64,000 bases of DNA, from contig CM074804.1 of NCBI GenBank assembly GCA_037447605.1, positions 2,666,001 to 2,730,000 on the forward strand. Direction: 5' to 3'. Made by a program: the position numbers and the translations under genes. This DNA is from Zygnema circumcarinatum SAG 698-1b. Taxonomy: Eukaryota; Plantae; Zygnematophyceae. Below are positions 15,701 to 63,485 of this stretch, one piece after another. The notes beneath the pieces were generated by a model. That model was given only the letters and a program-made list of their open reading frames with translations, made no database searches and was not told the origin of the DNA. How positions within the stretch are numbered: position 1 is the first letter of the stretch; every line of letters begins with the position of its first letter.

Positions 15701-16601
15701 AAAAAATAGGGCGCGGAATAAATGTGGTCCAATTGCAAGGCCAGAAGCGTCCGCCACGTCAGAAACCCTAAAACGGGACGGTCCTCCGGATAGAACTGCA
15801 TGTAGCTGGCGGTGCTCTCGCCCTGCTCTATGACGGTTCCTGCACAAGGGGGGGAGATTAGGGTTTAGGGTTAAAGGGAGAGTCGGAGGTTTAGGTCGAG
15901 GCTTAGGGGATTTGGGGCTGTGAGGGGTTTGGAGGTCTTCCGGATTTTGCGTACTTTTGCGGATTCCAGAGATTCAGAGCTCTGCTGAAATGAAGAGGGT
16001 TTAAGGATTGACAAGGTTTTGGGGTTCAGGGTTTAGGGTTTTAGGGGTTTTTTGTATAAGCAAAAAAATAGGAGCACTCACCGACGGCGCAGAGAGCCGC
16101 GATCGCGGCGAGCATGCCCATCGCCAGGGGGAAGGAGGCCAGCTGGCGAACCACACGCCGCCACGTCAGCTCCAAAAATCCGACCGGATCAATTTTTTGC
16201 ACCTGCCCGATGCTCCCTCGGGGGGGGGCAACGGAGAGGGTTGGAGCTTCAGTTCGAGCTTCAATTTCAATTTCCGGGGCAGAAACGAAATTATTATTCT
16301 CGCGATCTGCCTCCTTTGGGAATTTTTTTTTGCTTTCCGCGGAAAATGCAGAGGCCGCTTCTAAGGGAGGAGCTTCAGGAGTCGATTTTCCAAAATTTGG
16401 AGCATTTTTTTCTTTCATTTCTGCCCCCTTTTTATCTAATTTTGAGAAATTTTCGCGCTTTGCGAGGGCTAGGGGTGAAATTTTTATTGAGGGAAAAGGG
16501 GTGGAGGTGAGATGCCGAAATAATGGGGAGGGTCTGGAAATCCTGGAAACCCTAACATTCCAGGAAGCCCTTGAAAGCGTGGAACCACCATTTAGGGCCA
16601 T
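12742..16601 (-). CDS. CCS1: Cytochrome c biogenesis protein CCS1 (ResB/CcsB family), chloroplast-targeted
   Basis: Exons 16601-16082, 15839-15620, 15103-14992, 14833-14561, 14254-13986, 13765-13609, 13367-13284, 13011-12742; all phases consistent. Motifs GTVIEQGE, LQLDHIYSAPYF, YAFKGLVGRVAPIGVH, KTISVNDPLR, LYQTDW, DPSIPYVYAGFGGLML, VGGKSNRA. N-terminus is Ser/Arg-rich, like a transit peptide. Confidence 0.95.
13482..13565. repeat. (AACTG)n pentanucleotide microsatellite in a CCS1 intron
   Basis: Direct reading; a second array lies at 15185-15230. Confidence 0.9.
15185..15230. repeat. (AACTG)n pentanucleotide microsatellite in a CCS1 intron
   Basis: Direct reading. Confidence 0.9.
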
Positions 16602-16789
16602 TTTTGCGCGGGAGCACGGATAGTTATGTGGGGAGGGGGAGGTGGGAGGGAGAGATCGGAGGAGAGAGGGCGAGGAGGGAGAAAGCGAGAGAGAGGGAGA
16701 GAGGGTGGAAGCCATGGTTGAAAGCTTCGGGAAACGAGGAGATGGCGGTAGAAATGGAGCGTGATTGAAGGAAGATGTGCGGAGAGAGC

Positions 16790-17300
16790 GGGGCAAGGGG
16801 GGAGGGAAAGGGAGAAAGAGAGGGAGAGAAAGGGGGGGAGAGGGAGAGAAAGGGGGGAGGGGAAAGAGAGAGAGGGGGAGAAGGAGAGAGAGAGGGAGAG
16901 AGAAAGGGAGAGAGAGGGAGAGAGGGGAGGGAGAGGGAGAGAGAGAGAGAGAGGGGAGAGGGAGAGAGAGAGGAGGAAAGGGAGAGGGAGAGAGAGAGGG
17001 AGAGAGAGGGAGAGAGAGGGAGAGAGAGAAGGGGGGAGGGAGAGAGAGAGGGGGAGGGAGAGGAAGAGAGAGAGAGGGGGAGGGGGAGGGAGAGAGAGGG
17101 GGGGGAGGGAGAGGGAGAGAGAGGGAGAGAGAAAGGGAGAGAGAGGGAGAGAGAGGGGGAGAGGGAGAGAGATAGGGAGAGAGGGAGGGAAGGGGGAGGG
17201 AGAGAGAGGGAGAGAGAGAAGGGGGGAAGAAAAAGAAAGAGAGGGGGGGAGGGCGAGGGAGAGAGAGAGGGGGGAGGGGGAAGGGCGGTGGGGGAGAGTA
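16790..17300. repeat. GA-rich low-complexity tract upstream of CCS1
   Basis: Almost pure purine on the + strand; source of several spurious ORFs. Confidence 0.95.
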
Positions 17301-17361
17301 AGAGGGAGGGACCGGAGGAAAGGAAAAGAGCAGATGACCGTACCCACACGAATGGATAATA

Positions 17362-17890
17362 CCGTAAAACCGAACAGGTTGAGAAATAAAGAATTTGAAG
17401 ATTTTGGCTTCTCAAAAAAAACCGTTCAAAACCAGTTCTACAAAAAAAACCCTAATCTTTGTGAACACGATTTAATTTGAGAAGAGAGAACCAATTGAAC
17501 CTTGAACAACTAATTATCATTCGTGTTCAATTTGAGTTTTTCTTGGGTCCACCGATCAACATTGAGATTTTCGCGGATCGCGAAGAGAATGGACCCGTTT
17601 GTCCGTACTGAAATTGTTGGTCGGCTCGCGGGGAGAGCTGTACCAAAAAAGTGGGGCCCGGGTTAACCGGATCCCTCGAATCGCACGGAACCAACGTGAC
17701 AAAAATTGGAATCCACACGTGCGATCGAACCAATCGAGTCTTTGGACTTTTCCTTAAAGAACTTTTCGCTTTCTTAAATCGAAAAAGTTTCGACCTCGAG
17801 TGTTCAGAGTTCAACCCTATTCAATAAGATTGCGAATTGAAAAATTCAGTAAACTCGTTTCTCAATTTCTCAACCTCTTCGGTTTTACGG
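17362..17890. mobile_element. MITE family A copy 1 (Tc1/mariner-pogo-like, TA TSD)
   Basis: TA|CCGTAAAACCGAACAGGTTGAGAAA ... TTTCTCAACCTCTTCGGTTTTACGG|TA: 25-bp TIR with 1 mismatch. Interior is homologous to 53615-53973, 59962-60098 and 33012-33608. Confidence 0.85.
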
Positions 17891-18092
17891 TAGGGGGTCG
17901 CAAACTTGAACGACCATCTGTCATGCTGACGTCATATGGTTCAACTTTTCAAGTCAACGGCCGTTAAACCTGCTCCCTCGAGCGTGCCCGTGATCGTGAC
18001 GTGACGTGATTGTGTCCGTACGCCGCGGTGGCTGGGTCCACACCTCGGCCCGCGCGCGGGGTCGCAAACTTGTCGTGTTGCGCGGCCATTGG

Positions 18093-18154
18093 CCAATGGA
18101 GGATCGCCACGTGTCAAAAATATCTGAAGTGAATACGTGGCTTGCCACCATTGG
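18093..18154. promoter_or_regulatory. Convergent pair of CCAAT-N9-CCACG (ERSE-I consensus) elements
   Basis: CCAAT 18093-97 with CCACG 18107-11; CGTGG 18136-40 with ATTGG 18150-54. Confidence 0.6.
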
Positions 18155-19017: not shown

Positions 19018-24743
<5,726 letters not shown>

Positions 24744-24819
24744 GGCCGCCGCGAGGAGGGCGGGGCCGGGGAGGGAGAGACGGAGCCAGTCTCCCTTGAG
24801 AACTAAGATCGAGCGTCTT

Positions 24820-24873
24820 CCAATTGCGCCCCACCACGTGGACACATTTGTCAACGTGGCGAGGCACGATTGG
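24820..24873. promoter_or_regulatory. Convergent pair of CCAAT-N9-CCACG elements ~80-130 bp upstream of the fumarase ATG
   Basis: CCAAT 24820-24 with CCACG 24834-38; CGTGG 24855-59 with ATTGG 24869-73. Confidence 0.65.
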
Positions 24874-25535
24874 AAGAAGATCGAGCCTTGTGCCTCTAAC
24901 AGCCTCATGCCAAAGTACGAGCCGTTCGTACGGAAGTAAGGCAGGCCTCTTCAAATAGGGGAGATCCCCTAAATATCGTAAATAGCTTATTTATGTAAGA
25001 TTTTGAGATTAGTTTACGTGATTTCAACTTAAATACCACACAAGCCCCAAAAAAGCATTTTTTTGGTTAAAAACAAAAAGGAAATGAATTGCAGTTGCAA
25101 CCACGATAGCAATGATGTATATGAACTTTACTTGTTGGTATAACAACACGGCTTTAGAAACTGGTGCAACCTCTTCGACTCTTACAGATTGGTAAATTTT
25201 ACCAATCAATTAGAACAACTGTGCATTTGGCAATCACAATATATAGTTGCTTATTCAAAAACCCAATTGCACTGAAACTTTGTAGATCCAATCCTAAGCT
25301 CTCTATTTCCTTTTCCATCCATCATTAATTACTCCAAGTATCACTTTAGAATCCATCATAGTCTTGAAATTTCCTCACAAAAACTCTATTCCAAATCATA
25401 ACCTCTGAAATTCTAGGTGTAGTCACAAAAGAAAAACTGAAATAGGAACTAAAATTAGAAATGAAATGAAAAATGGTCTCACTCCCTTAGGAGTTTTAGG
25501 CTGATCAGGACAGCTATAGAAGTGATGCAAACTAC

Positions 25536-25700
25536 TCAAAGAGACCCTCGAAGAGTGTTCAAACTATCAAACCGTTTGCAGTGAAGAATGCCTTCCAATG
25601 AAAAGTCTGTCAACCTCTTTCGAAACTCGTCTTTCTCCCATCCAATTACTGAAAAATCAGACTCGACGGTAGCAATAGGGGGTGTCAGACTTAACAAAAT
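25536..25700 (-). pseudogene. hAT transposase C-terminal dimerisation-domain fragment
   Basis: LLSLTPPIATVESDFSVIGWEKDEFRKRLTDFSLEGILHCK fits the hATC pattern (P.T...E..FS......R..L....LE.L); lies inside hAT TIRs. Confidence 0.75.
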
Positions 25701-25929
25701 CTTACGAAAAGCGTTACGAAAAAAAAGGTTACGAAAGTACTCCGCCGCAGGAGGATCGCGATTATACTGGAGTACTCGTTCTGATGTCAAACTTACGAAC
25801 ACGCGTACTGAAAATTTTTAAGTCTGACACCCCCTACTGTTGGGAAATGATGAAGCAAGGTCTCCACAAAATTCTCGTCCGTACGTGTACGGTTTCGTCC
25901 GTATAGTCCATATTTACGTGTTTTTACAA

Positions 25930-26922
25930 GGAAAATTCTATTCTCACACCTTTTTTGTCTACACGCAGGCCTCTTTTCGCCGGGCAGATTTTAAAATAGC
26001 ACAAAAAAGGAACACACCTTTCACACCTTTTCACCCTTTTTTCTTTCACCTTTTTTTTCACACCTTTTTGGAATCGATACACACCTTTCTCCGTCGGGCA
26101 GATTTTACCCCTTCTTGTTTTTTTCAGAGAAAAAAATATCGGCCTGCCCGAATCCTCTCCGAGCGGAAGATCCGTCCGCCACGAGATCGTTCGCGGGTGG
26201 CCGTCCTTCACACGTGACTCTACACCGTCGATTCTAGCTCAGATCGCACCACGGCAGATCGGCAGATCGGCAGCACCGGGCTTGGTCACACGCCCACGTG
26301 TCCCACCCAAGCAAGCTCAAAGGTCCGTACACAAGTCGTACGGTCGCAGCTTCGAGGAAAGTCTAAAATCCTTAACATTGAGAGCTTGAACCAATCACCA
26401 TCTGCCGCGTGCGCGTATTAGACGTGGCAAACTGTGATTGGTACATGCACTCAATGACTAAATACGTTTTTTTGACTTTCCTCGAAGCTGCGCCTTATGT
26501 ACGGTCCATTGAGCCGGCTTGGGTGGGACACGTGGGACAGAGAACGGCTGCTGATCGAACGGTGATCTGCCATGGTGTGAACTGCGTGAAAATCGACGGC
26601 GGGAACTTATTGCACGTGTAAAGGACGGCCACCCGCGAACGATCTCGTGGCGGACGGATCTTCCGCTCCGAGCGGATTCGGGCAGGCAGATGTTTTTTTC
26701 TCTGAAAATATAAGATGAGTAAAATCTGCCCGACGGAAAAAGGTGCTCACGGCGCTCGGCCGCTCAGGACTAGTAGCGTGTATCGATTCCAAAAAGATGT
26801 GAAAAAAAAGGTGAAAAAAAAGGTGAAAAAAAAAGGTGTGTTCCTTTTTTGTCTATTTTAAAATCTGCCCGGCGAAATGAGGTCTGTGTGTAGACAAAAA
26901 AGGTGTGAGAGTAGAATTTTCC
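25930..26922. mobile_element. Fold-back Mutator-like non-autonomous element (B0) nested in hAT H1
   Basis: Termini GGAAAATTCTA / TAGAATTTTCC, ~290-bp inverted arms, 8-bp TSD TTTTACAA (25922-29, 26923-30). hAT paralogue H2 shows the empty site. Subterminal and core sequence is shared with B1/B2. Confidence 0.88.
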
Positions 26923-27466
26923 TTTTACAAAACCAAGTTAGGGGACAGTCCCCTATCTTAAGCCGAAATCCCCTATTTGAAGAGGCCTGAAGTAAGGTAT
27001 GACTTGTACGGTAATCATCAAAACCGTATATGTACGGTCTAGAAAGTACCTGCTGGTACACAGGCCGTACGGCCCTGAACGGTTCAGGGCACGGCTTCCC
27101 TCCGCTCGTCGCCCTCTCTCCTTCGCCCTCTCTCCGCTGCCCCCTCCGCCTCCTCCTCCTTCACTAGACGCAGTAAGGAGTACGGTATGGGCCGCGTCAG
27201 TCTCTCACATTGCCCTTCAATAATTTTTTAAAAACAGTGCTGGCAGGTTTCGCGCTCACCACTTATTTCGCAGGAACGCACGTGCTAAATTCGAATTCTG
27301 TTTCTTCCGGAAATGTGAACGATCGACACGCCCTACCCTTACTCTGTTGCATTCTCTCTGAACCCGTCCTGCTGAAGCCCGCCCTAATACCCGCAAAACT
27401 CTGCACTTTTGCTACGCTCTCATTTTCCCTCCCTCCCTCCCTCCCTCCCTCCCTCCCTCTCTCCCA

Positions 27467-47676: not shown

Positions 47677-50095
47677 TCATGCATACGCATCCGCAGCTGG
47701 CCACCCGTCGATCCCCTTCACCCACGGTCTCGCCAGCCTGTGATCTCTCTCTCCCTCTCCCCTCCCTCTCTCCCTCCCTCCCGGCAGACTCAGCAGCTTC
47801 CTCTGCCCCATCTTCTTCCTCTCCCTCTGCTCCTTCTCCTCCTTCATCTTCCTCAGCATATCTTTCTGCTCTTCTGTCTTATGCAGCAACCCTATTCCAT
47901 ACCTCAGCCTCCATGGGTCCACCTGCCAGTCATACGAGCGGTAGTGGTTTTCCGCATGTTTCAGCAGCGCCGCCTCCTTGCCCCTGAACCCCGCGTCCCA
48001 GCTCGCAATAAAATCCTTTTTAGCGCAAAAAGGAGCTTCCGGGGTTTCTATGTGCCTCCAGTAGCAGCCCTGAATGTAAAGGTCCCTGAACGCCGAATAG
48101 AACGGCTCTTCGTTCCAGTCAATGGGGACTTTGCCCCCCAGAGTGGCCCAGCTGGAAGCTTCCCAGATGCTTCCCATCAGGAACATTGGGAGGTTCGGGA
48201 ACGTGCCCGACAAGTTCGGATTTTTTTCCTCCCTAATCGGAATGCCATCTATGAGCCACCTGCAAATAAAAAAAGAATCACCATCACCAGAAAACCCTAA
48301 TCGTTACTACAAACCGGCAAAAATACAACATGAGAGACGACATTTATAAGTGATGCAAATTGCTAATTCTCGCAACACCTTTTCATTACTACAGGAGGGC
48401 GAAAAATCCCTCTCAGAAAAGGGCAAAAACGCAAGGATTACGCGTTGACTTACACAATGTGGTCCCAGTTGAGGTGTATGGAGTACTCATGAAAGTCGGC
48501 GCCCGGGTCAAACCACAACTGATGGCGCTGCTCGTGGTCTCCAATCCCTCCCGCGTACCAGTTCGTTTGAACAACGATCCCGGCAGAAGTCGTGTTTCCC
48601 AACATCTCAAAGTCAATCTCATCATGCAAGTCAACGCCCTGTTCTGTCCACTTCTGGTCCCATGCCGACATCAGCTGCAAAAGGACAGAATAACAGAGGT
48701 TGACATACATTGACTTTGACTTTTGGCATTGGTTCTGCAAGTTCGGGGCAGCTGCTAGCTAACCGGAGAGAGAGGGAACGAGGGAAATCGGGCAGGAGAA
48801 TACAATGGAAAAGTAACGGGAAACGGGTAACAAAGGATTTTAAAACGTACGTAAAATGCAGTAATCACGCCTGCAGAAAATCCGGATGGAAGTTTAAGTT
48901 TTCCACCAAACCGGCCATGGAACATGGGGTTCTTTGAGGAGAATCCCGAACCTGCCAACCGGCGAGAACGCATGTGAACGGAAATTCGGTTACATGGATA
49001 TCACTTCGATTCGGGCACAGATTCAGTTAGGTGACATCTTTTTAAAAACAGAGACGGCCCACTTTCAGCCCTACTGGCTTACATTGCTCAGGAAAATGCG
49101 GCTTAAGGTGCTCAGTAGAAAGCTTTTTGGCCAGTTTGAAAATTTCCTTCATTGGGGGACTTAGGGGTTTCAGGGTTGCAAGTAAAGTTGTCTCCAGTTG
49201 TCTTTAACTTTCAGTCTCGAATAAGTTAAGCCCAATTGTTTCTCCGGCCCCGCTAATAATCACTTTTGTTGGCGAGGAGCAAGTAAAAGTTACTGATATA
49301 AAAAAAAAGGGAAGGCTTTTTTTGCGCAAAAAAAGATAAATGGTGCCGCCGAATTGCCCACACAATCCTTCCACACCCCAAACCTCTCTTTCTCTCTACA
49401 TCTCTCCCCTAAAACTTTCCTCTCCCTCTCTCCAATTTCTCCCTCCCGCTCCTCTTTCTCTCTCTAACCTATTCTCATCTTCCTAATTAGATCACATCCC
49501 TCACTCTGCCTCTCCCCTCAGAATCATCTCTTTCCTTCCTCCCTCCCTCCCTTTCTCCCCCTCCCTCTCGCTTGTCACCCTCCCCTCAATCCACTCACCT
49601 CCCTTTTCCTCCCACCCCTTTCAACCCACCCTCTCCACCCCTTTACACCTTCCCTCTCTCATTCTCTCCCCTTTATCCTCTCCCCTGCTCCCCCTCTTTA
49701 CCCAAGTCCCACCTTTCCCCCTTTCCCTTTCCTTCCTCCCCATCTCCCTTTCCCTCCCTCTCCTACTTCCCCTCTCTAGGCCTCTTCCTACCTTCCCCCC
49801 CTTCCCCTCTCCCTCCCCCCATTTCCCGCTCTCGGCTCCCTCCCCTAATCCCCCCTCCACCCCCCTTCAAGCCCCACAGCGACGCAGCATTACCTGAGCG
49901 CCGCGTGAGCTTGAGCGCGATGATGTCCTCGTCCTCGCCCCAGCGCTCGGGCTCGCCCGTGGTCCACGAGAAGATGAAGTTCTTGTCGAAGTCGTCCGCC
50001 CGCGCCCTCCCCCTCCCCCTCCCCCCCAGCGCGAGCAGCGCCGCGCACCACAGCGCCGCCCGCACCCGCACCCGCGCCGCTCCGGTGGGCCCCAT
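47677..50095 (-). CDS. XTH: Xyloglucan endotransglucosylase/hydrolase (GH16 plus XET_C-like extension)
   Basis: Exons 50095-49894, 48951-48851 (101 nt, as in plant XTHs), 48674-48454, 48259-47677. Signal peptide, SAGVITAFY, catalytic HDEIDFEMLGN, N-glycosylation sequon NTT, WFDP, GSIWEASSWAT.GG. Confidence 0.93.
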
Positions 50096-50251
50096 TCCCC
50101 GGAGCGCCACGGCAGGAGGGAGGGCGAGGGCGAAAGGGAGAGGGAGAGGGAGTGGGAGAGGGAGGGGGAGAGGGAGAGGTAGTGGTAAGGAGAGGGAGAG
50201 GGAGGGCGGGAGAGCGGCGGTGTCAGCGGACCTACTTCCGAATGCGCAGTG

Positions 50252-50345
50252 CCGTACACTCAGGGCGTTTGAAAATGTACGGACCGACGGTGCCGTACAG
50301 ACAATGTGAACGGAGGCCAAGTACTGTACGGCCTCTAGTGTACGG
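50252..50345. promoter_or_regulatory. Cluster of five CCGTAC/GTACGG (SBP/SPL-type) sites upstream of XTH
   Basis: Sites at 50252, 50277, 50293, 50326, 50340, plus GTAC at 50321. Confidence 0.5.
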
Positions 50346-52688
50346 ACGGCGCAGCGAGGGCCCGCGCGCGTTTGAATGCGCGAGGACGGACGCGGCCATG
50401 GCCCGCACGTGCGGGGGAGCGGGACGTGACGTGACATGACCGCTTCGAGGCTAATCTGCCACGCGGTGGCGCAGAAGAAATGCCACGTGGCAGCGCGCCT
50501 GTCAGCGTCAGCCGGCTGTTCCCGCCCGGGCCAATGGAGCCCATGACACGTGTCACGCCTGACCACGGGCAAAAAATAAAGTACCCTCATCAGCGGACAG
50601 CCAATGGGGGGCCTCCATCACGTGACGCGAAGAATTTTGGCGCTTTCTGGGCTTTAAAGCCACCCGGCGGACACTAAATGTAAATTTTTCCGGACGGCGG
50701 GCATTGGCCGCCCGCCGGTCGACCGTTGGGGAGTGTAGTGTACGGCACTGTGATACGACACGGAAAATGCGGTTCGTCTTCCGGCGCACGCCGAGCACGT
50801 GACGGCCAGTTGCGGGCGTGGAACTGTCGAGCGTGACAGCGGACGTGATGACGTCATCTGTAGAAAGAGGCCGTACAAGCAAGGCAGATCTTATGCATAG
50901 CGACAAAAATGTCAAATGTCGGTGCGGCGCCAGAAAGCGCTGGAAGGTCGTGTCAGGCGGAAGGATTTTCTGTACAGATCCGTGAGAACGTGCCACGTGT
51001 CACACGGAGGCTCTCCGTTCCGTTTTCGCAGTTGAACGGTGCGGACTGACCTTCGCCGTCGGATCCATGGAACGAGCGCGGCGTTGGCGGAACTGCGGCG
51101 ACGCGGGCGCGTGGGGAGGAACAGCCGGATGGACCCCTGCGCGCCGCGCCATCGCCGCGCCTCCTCGCCGGTCAGACGGTCCGCCCGCACGGCCGGCGTG
51201 TGGGCCACATGGAAACGGGCGGCGCGTACCGCGCCGGGACGGGAGGGAGAGAGAAAGAGAGCGGAGGGGGCGGACTGCCGCCGGGTCGTCGGACCGCGCG
51301 GTGGTGGCGCGGTGGCGCCCGCGCGAAGCCGTCAGGCGGGAGGGAGGGAGGGAGGGAAGGAAGGAGGCGGCCTCGAGCCGCGACGGACACCTCCGGGATG
51401 CGCAGATCGTGCGGTCCTGCTGTGGGCTGCGGGAGGGGGCCTACTGGGGGGGTTACTGAGGGGCTTACTGCCTGCTTGGCTGCCTGCTGCAGAGCCGCCG
51501 GCTACCTGGTCAGTTTAACGCCTTTCACTCTATTATGTCCGCCAGCACTTCCTTGCTCGACGGGTTTTTCTTAAAGGTAAAGAAGTATCGTCATAAACAA
51601 TTAAAATATCTTCCTTGTTTCAAGTAAAATCGCCCAAGTAATTGATCAATGTTTCTCCTGAGTGATTTAGTAAGGGCTCTAGCCATTTGTAGACTTTGGT
51701 CAAAGACTGGACCGCACCGCGCTGCGACAACGACCGGCGTTCACCTCGCCATGGCGGGCGGCGCCACTCGATGGACCGCGCGGCCATGGACAGAAGCACG
51801 CGAAGGGGAGTCCGGCGAGCCGACGAAATGTAGAGGCGATGCGAGCCGGTCCCAACTGCCCGCTGAAGGAGGACCGGGAGGAAAAACTATACCTAGGTCT
51901 CACACTGCCGTACAGCTCACAAAACAGCCGCTTTGGTCGCCAGCACGTGGGGCCCGCCCATCGCGCTGAGGGGCGGGAGGTCGTCGGGCGGTCAACAAAT
52001 GCCGCAGCCTCAAGATGGCGCACGGCTCATCTCTCAGCACCTTCTACTATGCAGCACACCGCCGTCAGCACGCGGGTGATTACACACGAATTATTCAACA
52101 CAACATGGCACAAAACTCATCCAAAGGTTCCCTTTTCATTATCCGACTTCATATAATCATCATATGTAGTCTTAATGCCTCTCAAAGAACAAGAAAAAAA
52201 ATAATTTCTGGCTAGATTTCAGACTTTCGCAGTTCTTATGAAGCCAGAATCTCGGCGGAGGAGAGTGAGGTGCGGAGGACTTCAAACCCCGCGAGGGACC
52301 CTTCCGTGAATTGTACACCAAACCGCGCACTGGAACTACTACGATTCACATGCGAACGGAAGGGACCCCGTTCAGACTGTGTAGTCTCGTGACACAACAC
52401 GGAACGGCGGGTAACACCCGCCGTCCGATTTCTGCAGGTGCGACCGCCCCAGTGCGCCGACACGCGCACCGACACGCGCGCTACACGACAAGATTCCATC
52501 CTCTCGACAAAGATTTGCGGCGCCGCCTCACCGCGGTGGAGCCCACCGGCCGCCGCCCTGACTCGGACGGCCCCTGACAGGCGGAGCGGCGCGCTCTGAC
52601 GGGGTCCCCTTCAGCGGCCAATCGCGAGGCGGGAATGGTTGCCGGGAGACCGACCAGGGCCAGAAATTGAAGAAGTGAGTTTACTCAA

Positions 52689-53606
52689 GGGTAGTGATAT
52701 TTCCACCCCTTTTTTGGATCCAAACACCCCTTCCCGGCCGGGCAGAGTTCAAAAAGGATTAAAAACGGAAAATGCTTTCTTCACACCTTTTTGGAATCGA
52801 TACCACCCTCCATCGGCAGATTTTATTTCTGCGAAACAAGGAAAATGATAACCCGTCACCCCATTTGAATATCCCGCCTACCTGAATTTTTTTTCACGCG
52901 TGCGGTCAATCGCAGCCGTCGATTCCCTCGCAGATCGCAACACGGCAGATCACTATTTGATCTGCAGCCGGGCTCGGTCACAGCGCATGGCACGTGCCGA
53001 CGTATCCCGCCAAAAGTCCTCTCAAACGTTTGTCCGTACAAATGTCGTACGGTCGAACTTGAGGAACCCAAAAAATCGTACATTGAGATCTTAAACCAAT
53101 CAAAATTTTCCACGTCGAAAATTAAACACGTGGCAGATGTTGATTGGCTGAGAGCTAACAATGACGAGATCTCGGGCCGAGGGACGCGCGCACTCGCACG
53201 TGCGATCCGGCTTTGGCGGGACTCGTGGGCGCTTTCCATTCGCTAAGATCGAGCCCGGCTGCAGATCGAACGGTGATCTGCAGTGGTGTGATCTGCGAGG
53301 GAATCGACAGCTGCGATTGACACACATTACGTGGTGGACGAATCTGCCGCTCCGAGCGGATTCGGGCAGGCAGATATTTCTTTCCCGCAAAAAAAAAATT
53401 CAGGCAGGCGGGATACAGTATTCAAAATGCGATGACGGGGTATCATTTTCCTTGGTTAGCAAAAATAAAATCAGCCGACGGAAGAAGGTGGGTATCGATT
53501 CCAAAAAGGTGTGAAAAAAGCATTTTCTGTTTTTAATCCCTTTTGAACTCTGCCCGGCCGGGAAGGGGTGTTTGGATCCAAAAAAGGGGTGGAAATATCA
53601 CTACCC
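52689..53606. mobile_element. Fold-back Mutator-like non-autonomous element B1
   Basis: TIR starts GGGTAGTGATATTTCCACCCC, ~205 bp close match with symmetry to ~290 bp; perfect 8-bp TSD TTACTCAA. Confidence 0.93.
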
Positions 53607-53983
53607 TTACTCAATTTCTCAATTCTCTCAACCTTATGGAATAGGGTTGAACTTTGAACACTCGAGGTCGACGTTTTCTATATAAAGGAGGCGAAAAGTT
53701 TAAGAAAAAAACTTCAGAGGGACTCGATTGGTTCGATCGCAGGTGTGGATTCTACTTTCTGCCACGTTGGTTCGTGCGATTCGAGGGATCCGGTTAACGT
53801 GGGCCCCAGTTTTGCCGTACGACTGTCCCCGCGAGGCGATCAACAATTTCTGTACGAAACTCCAGGTCGACACGCTTTACGATCCGCTAAAATCTCATTG
53901 TTGATCGGTGAACCAAAGGAAAACTCAAATTGAACACGAACGATAATTACTGATCAATGTTTAATTGGTTCTCCTAAAAACTA

Positions 53984-54919
53984 GGGTAGTGATATTTCCA
54001 CCCCTTTTTTGGATCCAAACACCCCTTCCCGGCCGGGCAGATTTCAAAAGGGATTAAAAAAGGAAAATGCTTTTTTCACACCTTTTTGGAATCGATACCC
54101 ACCTTCCGTCGGCTGATTTTATTTTTGCTAACCAAGGAAAATGATACCCCGTCACCGCATTTTGAATACTGTATCCCGCCTACCTGAATTTTTTTTTTGA
54201 GGGAAAGAAATATCTGCCTGCCCGAATCCGCTCGGAGCGGAAGATCCGTCCGCCACGAGATCGTTCGCGGGTGTCCGTCCTTAACACGTGTGTGTCAATC
54301 GCAGCTGTCGATTCCCTCGCAGATCGCACCACTGCAGATCACCGTTCGATCTGCAGGCGGGCTTGATCTCAGCGAATGGAAAGCGCCCACGAGTCCCGTC
54401 AAAGCCGGATCGCACGAACGAGTGCGCTCGTACCTCGGCCCGAGATCTTGTTCTATTGTCAGCTCCCAGCCAATCAACATTTGCCACGTGTTAAATTTTT
54501 GACGTGGAAAATTTTGATTGGTCCAAACTCTCAATGTACAAATTTTTTGGTACGACCGTACGATATTTGTACGGACAATTTTTTTAGACGACTTTGGCGG
54601 GATACGTGGGCCCGTGCCAGTCGCTGTGAACGAGCCCGGCTGCAGATCAAATAGTGATCTGCCTCGTTGCGATCTGCGAGGGAATCGACGGCTGCGATTG
54701 ACCGCACGCGTGAAAAAAAATTCAGGTAAGCAGGATATTCAAATGGAGTGAAGGGTTATAATTTTCCTTATTTCGCAAAAATACAATCTGCCAATGGAGG
54801 GTGGGTATCGATTCCAAAAAGGTGTGAAAAAAGCATTTTCCGTTTTTAATCCTTTTTGAAATCTGCCCGACCGGGAAGGGGTGTTTGGATCCAAAAAAGG
54901 GGTGGAAATATCACTACCC
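53984..54919. mobile_element. Fold-back Mutator-like non-autonomous element B2 (inverted relative to B1)
   Basis: Same TIR; perfect 8-bp TSD AAAAACTA (53976-83, 54920-27). Confidence 0.93.
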
Positions 54920-55091
54920 AAAAACTATATTATTGAGAAAAAAACAACAGGCTGCGGATCAAGATCCTCGTGCGTTGCCTTTTTATAGAAATGTCTTCGA
55001 ACCTTAATTATGTGAAGTGAACTGAAACGGAAACTGATCGAACACATAAGCTGTTTAATATTGTGTTCTGTTCAGTTGCGCGAGGTGCGAT

Positions 55092-55630
55092 TTAACCAAT
55101 TAGAATGCACCACGTGGCCACTTTTAACACGCTGCGACACATACCCTATTTACAACAATACGTCCCGTAAAACATTCAAAACGAGCGCTGTCGTACATAG
55201 AAAACGACACGTGGCAATGACAGAATGGGAACGCAATATACCCCATTTTCTGCGCATTCGATCCAACGAAACGCACAGCCAATCAGGACGCGCGACGTGG
55301 CAACGTCAGACTCGCGGCAACTATACCCCATTTTCATTAAATCCATCTTTGACAACCTAACCGAATCCGTACGCCACATAAAACATCAAAATCGAACGCT
55401 GTCGTACGTAGAAAACGACCCGTGGCAATGACAGAATGGGAACGCGATATACCCCATTTTCTGCGCATTTGATCCAACGAAACGCACAACCAATCAGCAC
55501 GCGCGACGTGGCAACGTCAGAATCGCGGCAACTATACCCCATTTCCATTAAATTAATCTTTGACGACATAATCGAACCCGTCGTACGGATCAAAACGATG
55601 ACTAAGCTTTTGCCTACGGCAACGCAAAAG
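55092..55630 (+). repeat. Repeat family C copy 1 (internal ~210-bp tandem duplication, rich in ACGTGGC)
   Basis: Collinear with 59430-59950; the internal unit recurs at 55187 and 55398. Confidence 0.85.
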
Positions 55631-55998
55631 AGGGAGGTTAGATTTGTACCGTGATGAAGTGACAGAAATTCCACGTAGCTTGGCACAGCAGAAACCAACG
55701 ACGTCCAAGCCAAACTGAACGCAAATGATCAACGAACAAAACTATTTATTAAGTCACATCAAATAAGGCTGTCGTAACAATGGATTCGGCAACGGCTACC
55801 GTTTGTCAAACTACAAATAGAGCTGTTACGTATCTGTCAAACACGACACGGTACGTTAGAGCGGTTTTTAATTTGACCAACACGCATGACCGCTTCGGGC
55901 TGTCAACCTAACCATTCCAAATCTTGCGGTCCATAGTTTGACAACACAAGCTGTTACGGTTTACCAACACATACCGGTACAAACATCCCGTTTCAAGC

Positions 55999-56975
55999 AT
56001 TGTCAACCGACAATCACAATCCTGCGATTGCAAAAATCGTACAAAAATGGACCCACATCCTCGTCCACAACGATTGTCCAAATACAGCCGTTTCGTGCCA
56101 GTACGGTGACGGCGACGGTTGACCTACCGATTGCCCTCCCCGTTGTAGAGAGAGAGATCCTTTTGACCGCCGTGTCTCTTTTCGCTTATTTTCTCCGCTA
56201 CCGTCCCATGCCTGTTCAGACCAGATTCAAGGATCCACGCATGAGTGGTCCACATGGCAATCCTTACTTGATTCTGTGAGCCGAGCATTCCAGGCGACTC
56301 CACCGGACGCTTCTTCCGCCGCTGTCTGCCGCTGGGCGAACAAAAATTGACGGAAAAGGAAAGTTACGAAAAGTCAAGGCTAACCGGTCGGGCCGCAAGG
56401 CCGCGATTCGCGCTGTCAGAGCGCGCCAGAAATGCGATGAACGACGCCGCTGCCGGTGTCGATACGCCAGCGCTGCCGCTGGCGCGACACGCTAGTCCAC
56501 CCGCCGAACGTGAACCTGCTAGATACCTCTAGCGCCGACACACACGACGGTCTGCCATCGCATGCAACCGCCATCGGCTCGCAAGAGCCACGCTGCGCCT
56601 CGCCACCGCCCCCGCCATTTGGTTATTGTTCGCCTTTCGGGCGGGCGCCATACAAGCGGGTCGGCCGCTGGCTAAGCCGTATCCGCTGGCCGTATGCGTC
56701 GCAGATGAATCCACGCCGCCGGTGTCGCGACCGCCACTCGTCAGCGCGAATTTTGCACCGTCCGGACAGCCACTATTGATTCATGATGATCGCCGCCATC
56801 CCTCGGCCATGAGACACCGCGTAGTCGTGACGCCGCGTGGAGCCGCGCACCACGCGTGCCGCTTCGGGTATTGTCAACCGACAATCACAAACCCGCGATT
56901 ACGAAAAACGTAAAAAAAAGGGAACCGAAATAGAGCCAAATAGGGCCGTTTCGGGCCCGTACGGGGACGTCAAGG
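55999..56975 (+). repeat. Imperfect direct repeats (~100 bp) at 55999-56110 and 56870-56975 bracketing a GC-rich segment
   Basis: ATTGTCAACCGACAATCACAA is identical in both copies, followed by similar sequence. Confidence 0.7.
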
Positions 56976-57450: not shown

Positions 57451-57555
57451 GAGGCTACTAATCCAACATGTCAGCCACTAGTCTCATTACCTGTCCGTCT
57501 CAATTGGGCTGTACCAATCAGAAGTCACGTTGTCTGTGGATACTGATTTTCTCAG

Positions 57556-59428
<1,873 letters not shown>

Positions 59429-59429
59429 A

Positions 59430-59950
59430 ACAAATAGGAATGCACCACGTGGCCACTTTAAACACTCTGCGCAAATACCCTATTTACAACAATACGTCCC
59501 GTAAAACATTCAAACCAAAAACTGTCGTACATAGAAAAAGACACGTGGCAATGACAAAATCAGAAACGATATACCCCATTTTCTACGCATTCGATCCGAC
59601 GAAACGCACAACCAATCAGAACGCGCGACGTGGCAACGTCAGACTCGCGGAAATTATACCCCAATTTCATTAAATTCATCCTTCACAACCTAACCGAATC
59701 CGTACGCCACATAAAACACGCCGTCGTACGTACAAAGTGACACGTGGCAATGACAGAATAAGTACGCGATCTACCCCATTTTCGGCGCATTCGATCCAAC
59801 GAAAAGCACAACCAGTAAGGACGCGCAACGTGGCAAAGTCAGACTCGCGGCAACTATACCCCATTTTCATTAAATTAATCTTTGACAACATAATCGAACC
59901 CGTCGTACGGATCAAAACGACCGCAAAGCTTTTGCCTACGGCAACGCAAA
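59430..59950 (+). repeat. Repeat family C copy 2
   Basis: Collinear with 55092-55630; both end GCCTACGGCAACGCAAAA. Confidence 0.85.
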
Positions 59951-60282
59951 AATTAGTAACTCATTTCTCATTTCTCAAAATGAATAGTGTTCACAAATGT
60001 AGAGTTCTTTTTTCGAGGAACTGGTTTTGAAAGTTTGTATATGTTTGAGAATCCGAAATCTTTAATTTCTTTTTCTCTCAACCTGTTCGGTTTTACGGTA
60101 TTGGGGCTAGGGATGGATTAGTTACGATTATATATTATATATTATAATAATAACGCCTTTACAACATGTACGGTCGTACGGTCCTACGACTGTACGGTAT
60201 TATGCGGCCCGAGCACGAGCAGACAGAGAAAACCAGACGAACGCATTTCGCAATGTAGCACAAGATAAGTGGGGTTAAACAA

Positions 60283-63200
60283 GGGTAGTGATATTTCCAC
60301 CCCTTTTTTGGATCCAAACACCCCTGCCCGGCCGGGCAGACATAAAAAAGGACAAATAACGGAAAATGGCGTTTTCACACATTCTTAGAATCGATACAAC
60401 ACCTTTTTCCGTCGGGCAAATTTTATTTTACAAAAAAAAGGTCGAAACCCTAAAGAGTGCGTCCGCCCTGCCCCATCAACCCCTCCCTTCAAGCAGTTCG
60501 CGCGACGCACCAGATGATGGAGTTCGCCACGCGGGAGGAGTTGATTGAAAATCTCAGGAACAGCCATAAACAGGAAGGAGTGGTACTCACCGTCAAGAGG
60601 AGCAAGGAGAAACGGGTGGTCCTAAAGTGTGACCGAGGTGGGCTGTATGAAAACCGTTTAAACTTGACAGATGGAACTCGTCAAAGGAAAACGCATACAA
60701 GACTCACTAACTGTGAGTTTGAAATCATATGCTCATCACTAAAGGGTGTTTGGGCAGTTCGCAAAATTTGCGGCAGTCACAACCATGAGCTAGATGTCAA
60801 CTTGGCAGGCCATGCAGTTGACACGACGCTTAAGCAGTCCAGAGAAGGCTAGAGTGCGAGCACTTAGTGGCCAAGGCTTGGCACCAAAGAATGTTATCAC
60901 CGTTTCTTCGGTAGCATTTCAAACAGCTGGCCAGTCAGCCTGTGATTACCTACAATCCAGCTTAAGGTTGCTCGAAGAGAGGAGCAGAGACCCAGACCCA
61001 TCAAGCATTAATGTGAGCTTAATCTCCTCGCATCTAACTATTTCAAGAAGGCACGGCCGTGGGAGGCGGTTGATTGCGGTGTTCTTTATGCACCAATCAT
61101 CGTAACACATGTGCCACATTCAATACGCCTTCTTTGGATCGCGACCTACAAGACTAGCGAAGCTACATGCTCTAATGAACGCTGTCGCATCACATCCACG
61201 TATGCAACATTTAATGCCGGCTTTGGCGCTCATGCACGGTGAAACCAGAGTATACACCGGTTTTGCAACAATTTTCTGGTTATTGGGAACTCCTAAGGTC
61301 CCATGCACTGACCGGTAGTTGGCTTTAAATTTAACGGATCAGCATTAAGTCTTTTCCGGCCGCCACAATATCCTTTTGTTGCTGGCATATTAATAAAACG
61401 CTATAATCGCGAAGATAAGCTCGATGTCGAACGGGAGTGAGCTTACGGCTTACGGAATCGCTGTCTCGAAAGCAAATCGTTGAACTCTTTGGAGGCGCTT
61501 TAGGTGCGCTTTTAAAAGAGACTTCTGCTTAAAAAGTCACCCAAACCGGCCACATTACGCTAACAAAGACATGGACGCCATACAAGGAGAGATTTGTAGC
61601 ATGCTTTGTAGATGAGTTTTACCCTTTTGGTAATGCTGACATCTCGAAAGAGAGGGAAACCATCATAAGATCGCTCATATCTCAAAGGAACATCGCACTT
61701 ATTTCCCGCAACAAAGCGTCAGCTTGCGCCGGCTAATCAACGTGTAGAACTCACGTCGCTATCGGTAGCGTAAACAACGATCGCACATCGCTTCAACCAT
61801 CATCAAGCTTCAAGGATTTGATCTTCAAGGTTTAATTCCGCTTTGACAAACCGCTGAAATGTTAAACCGGGCCGAAATGGGGATACGAAGAGCAGACATG
61901 CGATGCGCTTCCTCCGTGAAGTTTCATGGGACTACCCTGCCATCATTATATTCGGGTCATGAAACCAAAACTCCAATCTACTTACAAGATATTCATGAAA
62001 GCAAAGTGGCTATTGATCGTGAATCCTTTACTTTTCCTGCAAAGCCAGCCAAATTTAGCCAAGGCCACCATATGAACCATTTATGGAGAAGATGACGTGT
62101 ACTTTACAAGAAGCGCCTCTGTTGGGAATCCTCGCAAAACTTTGATGGCTCAGCCTTTAGTGGGAAGTCCTCGATACTGTAAGCTCCAAATTCAAGAGCC
62201 TTTAGGGGTTGTAGTTAAGAAACGCAGACTAAAGAGGTTCCTTAAGAAGAAGACAAAGTTTGATCATCGAGATAAATCACTTTGAATATGTAGAAGGACC
62301 TATGTAGGGTTTGTAAATAAGCAGGCATACCCGTAATCCTGCTCGCAAAAAGTGATCACCATCGGCGAAGGACCTTCCCACCGCCGAGGGGCAGGGTGGC
62401 TGAAATGTTTTAGGGTAAGTTTCTACCCTTAACTTTTTTTGTCCTAAGTCCTTTGCAATGAGTTCTTTAAGTGTCCTTTTATGCAGTTGTTTTTATACCC
62501 AAAATACCGTGGTTTGGGGAGGGCCGGCAGTGGGGGGTGTTAAGCTGTCATGAAAACAACATCCTGGGCGATAGAGCTTCAATAACATCCATCTAGAGGC
62601 GAGAGAGCGATCACAAGAGAGTACAAAATCAAGTAACAAAAGAGTTTGTTTTAGATTGTAGTAATTTCTTGCTTAATCTTTTGCCTATTTACACACCTCG
62701 GCCGCCAGTTGACAAGTGGAATAACCAAAGCTCGCATCGTAGAACCAATTCTATCTTGAGGAACAAATTCGCCTCACGAAGGCAAGTAGAACCCTATGGA
62801 ACATAATTTGTGTTCAAGAAGTCGATTCACCAAACAATGTAAGCTTTATGTTCTAGAGGATGTATGTTAAGCCTTACAACCTATGGGGCTTACAACCTAT
62901 GGCTTGCTCTGGCGATGGCCATGCTCAATATGAAGCCATGCCCATGGTCGACCCCATCCATAAGTCCATAATGGCCCGACTGAAAAAATTTCCATGTAAC
63001 ATAGCCAGCTTCGCAACCTTGGCCTCGATCTTAGTCGGGCTTTTGGTCTTGTTCCGTGGGGCGCCATAACATAGACCATAAACTACCAAGTTAATCGGCC
63101 GCACATCGAAGGCCGGCCTTGGACCTATACTATTGAGTTATCCGGGCCACGTACAATTTGTACACGCGTCGCGGTTCCCGCTTGATCTTACGCCCTCGAT

Positions 63201-63485
63201 TTATCGGCGAGTAGGAGGTTCTGATCGTGAGCTTTAACCTCAACTGCTAACCGGGATAGGATGTCATGACAATACTGCACAATGTGAAATGTAAATCAAT
63301 GCAAGTACGCGACATCTTGTGGCAGGGTTTCACCTTTTTTGTAAAATAAAAATTTGCCCGACGGAAAATGTGTTGTATCATTCTAAAAAGGTGTGAAAAC
63401 GCCATTTTCCGTTATTTGTCCTTTTTATGTCTCACCGGGGCCGGCAGGGGTGTTTGGATCCAAAAGGTGGAAATATCACTACCCC
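60283..63485 (+). mobile_element. Decayed transposase-encoding Mutator-like element (B3)
   Basis: ~165-bp TIRs starting GGGTAGTGATATTTCCAC, 8-bp TSD TTAAACAA (60275-82, 63486-93); transposase remnants inside. Confidence 0.92.
60514..61960 (+). pseudogene. MULE/FAR1-type transposase pseudogene (frameshifts and stops)
   Basis: FAR1-like Zn module LKCDRGG..TRLTNCEF..W..GSHNHEL..GH; MULE-core remnants ATYKT and ITSTYATFNAGF / ALMHGET; TWTPYKERFV..FGN at ~61569-61675; SWIM-like MGLPCHH at 61926. Confidence 0.85.

Follow-up and report, generated by a model that had tools for sequence, protein, structure and literature searches.

Probable Mutator-derived foldback elements with mirror-paired CCAAT-N9-CCACGT boxes in the streptophyte alga Zygnema circumcarinatum

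MITEs (miniature inverted-repeat transposable elements) have amplified transcription-factor motifs, namely those of bZIP60 and PIF3 in Prunus, E2F in Brassica and TCP in tomato (Morata et al. 2018, PMC5950925). In the rice MITE Youren, a CCAAT (NF-Y) box at the boundary between the terminal inverted repeat (TIR) and the internal region is linked to transcription of the element (PMC9314911). Mutator elements contain inward-reading promoters and enhancer motifs within their long TIRs (PMC3310237). Here we describe three elements, B1, B2 and B0, located in a 64,000-nucleotide stretch of the genome of Zygnema circumcarinatum SAG 698-1b (assembly GCA_037447605.1, contig CM074804.1, positions 2,666,001 to 2,730,000 of the forward strand). 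This whole stretch is hereafter called the window, and coordinates refer to it. We interpret the three elements, with a probability of about 0.6, as foldback derivatives of FAR1-type Mutator-like elements (MULEs), whose inverted arms carry constrained promoter boxes of the host type that are predicted to bind NF-Y and bZIP factors.

Similar to the motif-amplifying MITEs, the B elements are short, non-coding, multi-copy DNA transposons that bear a host transcription-factor motif, including a bZIP motif with an ACGT core, and can place this motif near genes. Those MITEs belong to PIF/Harbinger and carry single motifs (PMC5950925), whereas the B elements are MULE foldbacks of ~0.9 kb in a streptophyte alga and harbor a mirror-paired NF-Y/bZIP composite with N9 spacing. 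With Youren they share a CCAAT box within a non-autonomous element, and Youren also possesses a partial mirror copy originating from its inverted repeat. However, the CCAAT of Youren is complete on one side only and lacks an ACGT box coupled to it, and transcription was measured in Youren, whereas the B elements are read from sequence (PMC9314911). The TIRs of MuDR and other MULEs (100-500 bp) also contain regulatory sequence, with two converging promoters from which Pack-MULEs are expressed (PMC3310237), and if such an element were reduced until only the arms were left, a convergent pair resembling that of the B elements would result. Here, in contrast, no autonomous element with the inner arms of the B elements was found in the window, the target-site duplications (TSDs) are 8 bp rather than 9-11 bp, and no gene fragment is present. 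The Mutator/Foldback element Tm1 of root-knot nematodes shares the foldback architecture combined with a Mutator-type transposase; it belongs to another kingdom, and its title and abstract indicate no promoter-box content (PMC3169594). Elements of this general kind have thus been published, both as MITEs multiplying bZIP60, PIF3, E2F, TCP or NF-Y sites and as Mutator/Foldback hybrids. The new features are the MULE-derived foldback carrier, the streptophyte-alga host, the two-part motif arranged with fixed spacing as a mirror pair, and the apparent use of the same composite as a genome-wide promoter box. Our literature search found no report on this composite in connection with transposable elements, nor on the endoplasmic reticulum (ER) stress response element (ERSE) in streptophyte algae.

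ERSE-I, with the consensus CCAAT-N9-CCACG, is an ER-stress element of animals and plants that involves NF-Y and ATF6/bZIP28. The boxes of the B elements have the identical consensus and spacing, and two of them converge at the center of each element (Table 1). The preliminary description of this DNA reported central dyads of the form CCAAT-N9-CC(A/G)CG, 13-14 nt, CGTGG-N9-ATTGG, and both their coordinates and the single CCGCG were recovered exactly. The half-sites of B1, B2 and B0 comprise five exact ERSE-I consensus sequences and one CCGCG variant. The same description placed CGTAC sites on the flanks of the core, which is accurate for B0 and only partly so for the other two elements. In B0, sites are found on both sides of the dyad, whereas in B1 and B2 the TCCGTAC/CGTAC cluster occupies one side, and the opposite side of the B2 dyad has a lone CGTAC 41 nt out. 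The blocks homologous to the TCCGTACAAATGTCGTACGGTC cluster of B1 are located at ~54552-54575 in B2 and at 26324-26345 in B0.

B1 and B2 both start with GGGTAGTGATATTTCCACCCC and end with the complement of this sequence. Compared in their opposite orientations, the two elements are 93% identical, while B0 shows ~63% overall identity to them, with block-wise conservation. Exact 8-bp TSDs are present at all four elements (B1, B2, B0 and the related B3). The TIRs are long, with the outer 116-128 nt being 95-97% complementary and the pairing extending over more than 300 nt. In B1, arm pairing spans ~326 and ~395 nt, and the earlier estimate of 200-290 bp was too short. One arm type contains an extra block of ~70-110 nt, which is present in both B0 arms as well, and the B0 palindrome is continuous up to the center. 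Folding of B1 as DNA yields one long hairpin (minimum free energy -367 kcal/mol, z = -38) that pairs inward from the termini, with local stems near the center as the exceptions, in agreement with a foldback architecture. The largest open reading frame (ORF) of the elements, a 127-aa frame across the B1 core, has no homologue in a set of 5.8 billion proteins. Together with the cognate element in the window, this agrees with the former view of B1, B2 and B0 as non-coding foldback derivatives of the MULE family, although the limits implied for B0 were approximate and are corrected here (Table 1). Compared with MITEs, the elements are non-coding, possess TIRs and TSDs and reach very high summed depth, but their 918-993 bp exceed the customary 800 bp. 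We considered and rejected a composite transposon comprising B1, the spacer and B2, because the sequences on its two outer sides, TTACTCAA and AAAAACTA, are not the same and both elements possess a TSD of their own. B1 and B2 are two separate insertions, because each is bordered by its own exact 8-bp direct repeat.

The affiliation of the family is provided by B3, whose termini are those of B1 and B2 and whose outer ~145-165 bp are 78-86% identical to B1. The first ORF of B3 matches the Pfam family AFT (E = 1.3e-5, passing the cut-off) and FAR1 (E = 1.8e-4, failing the curated cut-off), and has 538 relatives among 1.84 billion representative proteins. Several of these have a MULE domain, and the closest longer ones (P0003, P0008, P0011, P0006 and P0027) contain the MULE transposase domain PF10551. 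In tblastn searches, P0003, P0008 and P0011 align along B3 60523-61741 in three different frames, and beyond the N-terminal domain the B3 pieces have no further match in Pfam. The transposase gene of B3 is dead, because its alignment to PF10551-positive proteins is frameshifted. The suggestion that a cognate transposase gene lies in the window thus holds for the shared termini and the match to MULE transposases, whereas the gene itself is a decayed relic rather than intact. The shared termini and the FAR1/MULE-domain matches therefore identify B3 as a decayed Mutator-like element and B1/B2 as its non-autonomous relatives, and we assign the family to FAR1-domain MULEs with high confidence. MULE duplications are described as 8-10 bp long (PMC5225508), which includes the 8 bp found here, while surveys of flowering-plant MULEs use a longer range of 9-11 bp (PMC3310237). 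The TSD length also prompted us to consider hAT, which was rejected since the B3 remnants match FAR1 and MULE-domain transposases. The coding DNA of B3 shows ~66-73% nucleotide identity to MULEs on metagenome/ENA contigs (L002:9878-11722, L003:9970-11136, L006:2371-4204 and L007:1310-3143), which have a GC content of 36-43%, evidently belong to other organisms, and have TIRs unlike those of B3. Neither B-type arms nor N9 boxes were found at the MULE-homologue loci L001-L007 (other organisms, GC 36-49%), and metagenome scans with the terminal 21-mer and with a conserved sub-terminal 21-mer gave no match each.

Table 1 Positions of the B elements, their internal features and the insertion site within the window.
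Feature	Position	Strand	Sequence	Remarks
B1	52689..53606	.		918 bp, non-coding foldback, very probably MULE-derived
B1 TSD	52681-52688 and 53607-53614		TTACTCAA	8 bp, exact
B2	53984..54919	.		936 bp, non-coding, inverted relative to B1
B2 TSD	53976-53983 and 54920-54927		AAAAACTA	8 bp, exact
B0	25930..26922	.	GGAAAATTCTA.. (termini)	993 bp, diverged subfamily member, termini unlike B1/B2
B0 TSD			TTTTACAA	8 bp, exact
B1 central dyad	53096..53147		CCAATCAAAATTTTCCACGT..CACGTGGCAGATGTTGATTGG	Convergent pair of CCAAT-N9-CCACGT boxes, CCACG cores 14 nt apart
B2 central dyad	54470..54521			Convergent pair of CCAAT-N9-CCACGT boxes, cores 14 nt apart
B0 central dyad	26391..26441			Left CCAAT-N9-CCGCG, right exact CCAAT-N9-CCACGT, 13 nt between cores
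GTAC-core cluster of B1	53033..53054	+	TCCGTACAAATGTCGTACGGTC	SBP-type, 42-63 nt outside B1 left box
B3	60283..63484	+		3.2-kb decayed MULE of autonomous type, TIRs ~145-165 bp
B3 TSD			TTAAACAA	8 bp, exact
B3 N-terminal ORF	60457..60852	+		FAR1/AFT (WRKY-GCM1-type) DNA-binding domain
B3 transposase remnants	60818..61741	+		Frameshifted, collinear with MULE-domain (PF10551) region of homologous transposases
Host site of B1 and B2	52642..55017	.		Single member of an unrelated family of ~0.5-kb MITEs
Second MITE copy	17360-17892		TACCGTAAAACCGAACAGGTTGAGAAAT...	34-nt TIRs

The box is also found in host DNA. The window contains 13 exact CCAAT-N9-CCACG sites against 0.13 expected, while spacings of 0-24 other than 9 occur 0-1 times each, and a chance origin of these sites is excluded. 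The base T directly follows the site in all 13 cases, so the element reads CCAAT-N9-CCACGT. Eight of the 13 sites lie outside the B elements. The boxes at the centers thus correspond to a real promoter element of the host with strict spacing. Two convergent pairs are located in host DNA, at 18093-18154 (62 bp) and 24820-24873 (54 bp). An ATG at 24743 (minus strand) has the latter pair 77-130 bp upstream of it and opens an ORF starting with MAAMAAL that we take to be the N-terminus of fumarase. This presumed fumarase promoter dyad forms the center of a palindrome with 43-nt arms (24802-24891, 77% complementary), which extends past the boxes and resembles the center of a foldback in form. Because a box pair stands upstream of the fumarase ATG, CCAAT-N9-CCACGT looks like a general promoter box in this genome rather than an ER-stress switch, as judged within the window. 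The earlier designation of the boxes as a stress element is therefore not supported. The composite also differs from ERSE-I in its occurrence in a promoter of a housekeeping gene (fumarase) and in repeats, in its mirror pairs and in the invariable CCACGT. TCCGTAC, with the GTAC core of SBP-type sites, is enriched in the window, with 21 occurrences compared with 3.9 expected. The distance of a GTAC core from the outer side of one box is 42-76 nt in the two host pairs, B1 and B0, and 29-48 nt in B2; given the few sites, this common layout of host pairs and B elements is only a hint.

Conservation of the boxes was assessed by aligning the six half-elements from terminus to center, with B1L, B1R, B0L and B0R taken as independent arms. 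The box columns (CCAAT and CCACGT) are invariant at 10 of 11 positions, compared with 10 of 89 (~11%) among the other columns of the last 100 (Fisher p = 1e-7). Over these four diverged arms, the motifs are thus kept better than the surrounding DNA, as had been proposed. The 9-nt spacers match at 5-8 of 9 positions. The arms also have the extensions CCAATCA and T.TGCCACGT in common, which recur at host sites such as 806 and 59089. In the arm type represented by B1R and B2L, ~60 nt just outside the box are unalignable with the other arms, while the box and its spacing are intact. Since the boxes persisted although the arm sequence around them diverged or underwent replacement, the box bases are probably under constraint. 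Among the majority-level read variants (40 of 517 places listed), none of the ten near the cores falls in box bases, where ~1.3 would be expected, a difference that is not significant.

The arms are mirrored and carry one box each, and a convergent pair therefore results at the center. The preliminary description viewed this pair as cargo of the Pack-MULE type. In that scenario, a fragment of a bidirectional host promoter would have been acquired between MULE TIRs and carried as a passenger, and the two host pairs described above, each with a GTAC core 42-76 nt outside, would be promoters of the appropriate form. Moreover, B3-type elements match B1/B2 in the outer ~150 bp only, which suggests another origin of the inner part. 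However, a Pack-MULE carries a unique segment between its TIRs, whereas the box region of the B elements is mirrored in both arms, and the inner region of B0 is an inverted repeat up to its center. No parental host fragment for the core was detected by BLAST within the window. With the boxes masked, the host dyad regions and the B elements show no residual similarity (z -1.8 to 1.4), and the dyads are unlike in length, at 51-52 bp in the transposons versus 54 and 62 bp in the host. Capture is accordingly highly improbable, and the description of the boxes as cargo was not upheld. The box pair fits a component of the arms, comparable to the TIR-borne promoters of MuDR, better than captured cargo. 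We also asked whether the host dyads are recognizable relics of B elements, and rejected this, as the likeness in the two dyad regions stops at the boxes.

We propose that the non-autonomous B1, B2 and B0 were moved in trans through the long terminal repeats that they share, generating 8-bp target duplications. From the outside inwards, each inner arm would present a TCCGTAC site with a GTAC core, CCAATCA, exactly nine bases and (T)GCCACGT, and the boxes of the two inverted arms would meet as a convergent pair at the center. The retention of the box while arm sequence diverged or was replaced points to constraint, for which binding of NF-Y together with a bZIP factor is the most likely cause. 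Such binding may confer a promoter-like, open-chromatin character on each copy, which could benefit the element. As an incidental effect, an orientation-independent promoter or enhancer module might be dropped beside genes. Real regulatory activity of the boxes is possible, at somewhat less than even odds, and judging from sequence features a role of the B elements as a vehicle spreading promoter modules is plausible.

Logan contigs of two DNA runs (X9 and X13) and two RNA runs were placed on 51000-56500 at a likeness of at least 80%. In X9, the summed word depth, which does not equal copy number, is 11.3 in the unique left flank, 5,868 in the B1 core bin and up to 36,140 in the TIR bins, and the corresponding values in X13 are 68.6, 12,864 and up to 102,860. 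In X9, some 40 distinct contigs cover the core. The summed depth suggests that the B family is of high copy number, plausibly with hundreds of copies. In the RNA contigs of the two runs, TIRs and arms of family members are represented, and the hairpin of B1 is exceptionally stable, as given by its folding energy. Both would suit a main effect at the RNA level, in which read-through of the near-perfect 0.4-kb hairpin produces double-stranded or small RNAs against the TIRs of the family, similar to Mu killer, and the boxes are irrelevant. We regard this as very unlikely to be the explanation, since it does not account for boxes and spacing that were retained amid changing arm sequence; it is also compatible with arm-borne, constrained boxes and does not exclude them. 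Two loose-end sequences of RNA contigs were not found in the window.

Several observations weigh against arm-borne boxes kept by constraint. The comparison is limited to three elements with four effectively independent arms, the box was chosen post hoc, and poor alignment of the neighboring sequence inflates the contrast. B0L and B0R compared alone show no contrast between the box and the rest (10/11 vs 74%). Conservation is not specific to the boxes, because other blocks are conserved as well, for example CATTGAGAG, GTCCGTACA..GTCGTACGGTC and the sub-terminal CACACCTTTTTGGAATCGATA. The single relative of autonomous type seen in the window, B3, lacks both the inner arms and the CCAAT-N9-CCACG box, as determined by pattern count and BLAST. 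The difference in dyad length between transposons and host, noted above, counts here as well. Moreover, RNA contigs over the TIR and core scale with DNA depth, with an RNA/DNA ratio of ~0.01 in both, compared with 0.17-0.27 for the neighboring MITE and the unique flank. The RNA contigs give no sign of initiation at the core, which is crossed by direction-less contigs that derive mostly from other copies and are thus uninformative in this respect.

The small number of arms, the lack of box contrast within B0, the equally conserved blocks and the RNA depth would all be expected if the boxes are neutral hitch-hikers, inherited from one ancestral arm and having no role, with their conservation reflecting a few related copies and an alignment artefact. 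This explanation is unlikely, although it merits more weight than capture or an effect through RNA. The pentamers, the following T and the 9-nt spacing are intact in 11 of 12 half-sites, and the box has survived across arms that are 27-58% identical nearby as well as across a segment replacement. In host DNA, the composite is ~100-fold enriched at exactly N9, and the extended bases CCAATCA and TGCCACGT fit host sites too. On balance, we retain the interpretation of arm-borne, constrained boxes of the host type.

The site that received B1 and B2 belongs to an unrelated MITE. After removal of B1, B2 and one TSD copy each, the locus is collinear with 17408-17890 (82% over 470 nt), and the two elements therefore landed independently, in opposite orientations, in a single MITE copy. 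The DNA between and beyond B1 and B2 is repetitive as well, and no tRNA or Rfam origin was found for the repetitive spacer. A 177-bp part of the MITE (53773-53949) recurs in DNA and RNA contigs at ~83-85% likeness. None of the contig joints listed spans an empty B1 or B2 site, and no insertion polymorphism was revealed. At 54938-55160, near-perfect RNA contigs (1-2 differences) have a leftward extension that is absent from the window; they break right after the AG at 54936-54937, which may represent a splice acceptor or a near-identical copy elsewhere. CpG depletion was considered as a signature of silencing and discarded as non-discriminating, with observed/expected ratios of 1.22-1.24 in the B elements and high values in the neighboring repeats too.

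Further repeats are present in the window. Tandem units of ~200-211 bp form two arrays at 55093-55630 and 59428-59951, which are 88% identical to each other and reach a summed DNA depth of up to ~12,500 versus 11.3. Each unit has words resembling the box, CCAATCAG.ACGCGCGACGTGGCA on one strand and CCATTCTGTCATTGCCACG on the other, and the arrays look like another repeat family with near-ERSE boxes. A 35-nt inverted repeat (CAGGCCTCTTCAAATAGGGGA..., 83%) delimits ~2 kb of DNA at 24942-26989 that include B0. Probably, B0 is nested here in another TIR element, which begins ~70 bp past the fumarase promoter dyad. Low-complexity DNA at 16600-17320 and 57500-57780 comprises a long G+A-rich tract and a block of (GT)n/(GTCA)n microsatellites. 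The region 50000-52000 is unusually GC-rich (64%), and no RNA contigs of the two RNA runs cover 51000-52287.

The relationship between the host dyads and the B elements could also be one of descent. A MULE-derived foldback family might be the source, or a continuing supplier, of the palindromic CCAAT-N9-CCACGT dyads of the genome, with the arms decayed and the selected center left. The 43-nt-arm palindrome around the fumarase dyad fits this possibility, whereas residual homology to the B elements is absent in both host dyad regions, and we consider it quite unlikely. If it were true, a general promoter architecture of a streptophyte alga would have been seeded by transposon insertions. If the boxes are inert, the B family would be an ordinary, abundant MULE-derived repeat, and chiefly a confounder in counts of ERSE-like motifs in this genome. 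If they are active, the family would link the genome-wide NF-Y/bZIP promoter grammar of an alga closely related to land plants with a mobile copier that works in either orientation. It would then offer a natural system for studying how promoter architecture spreads, and whether mimicry of host promoters serves transposons as a means of remaining accessible.

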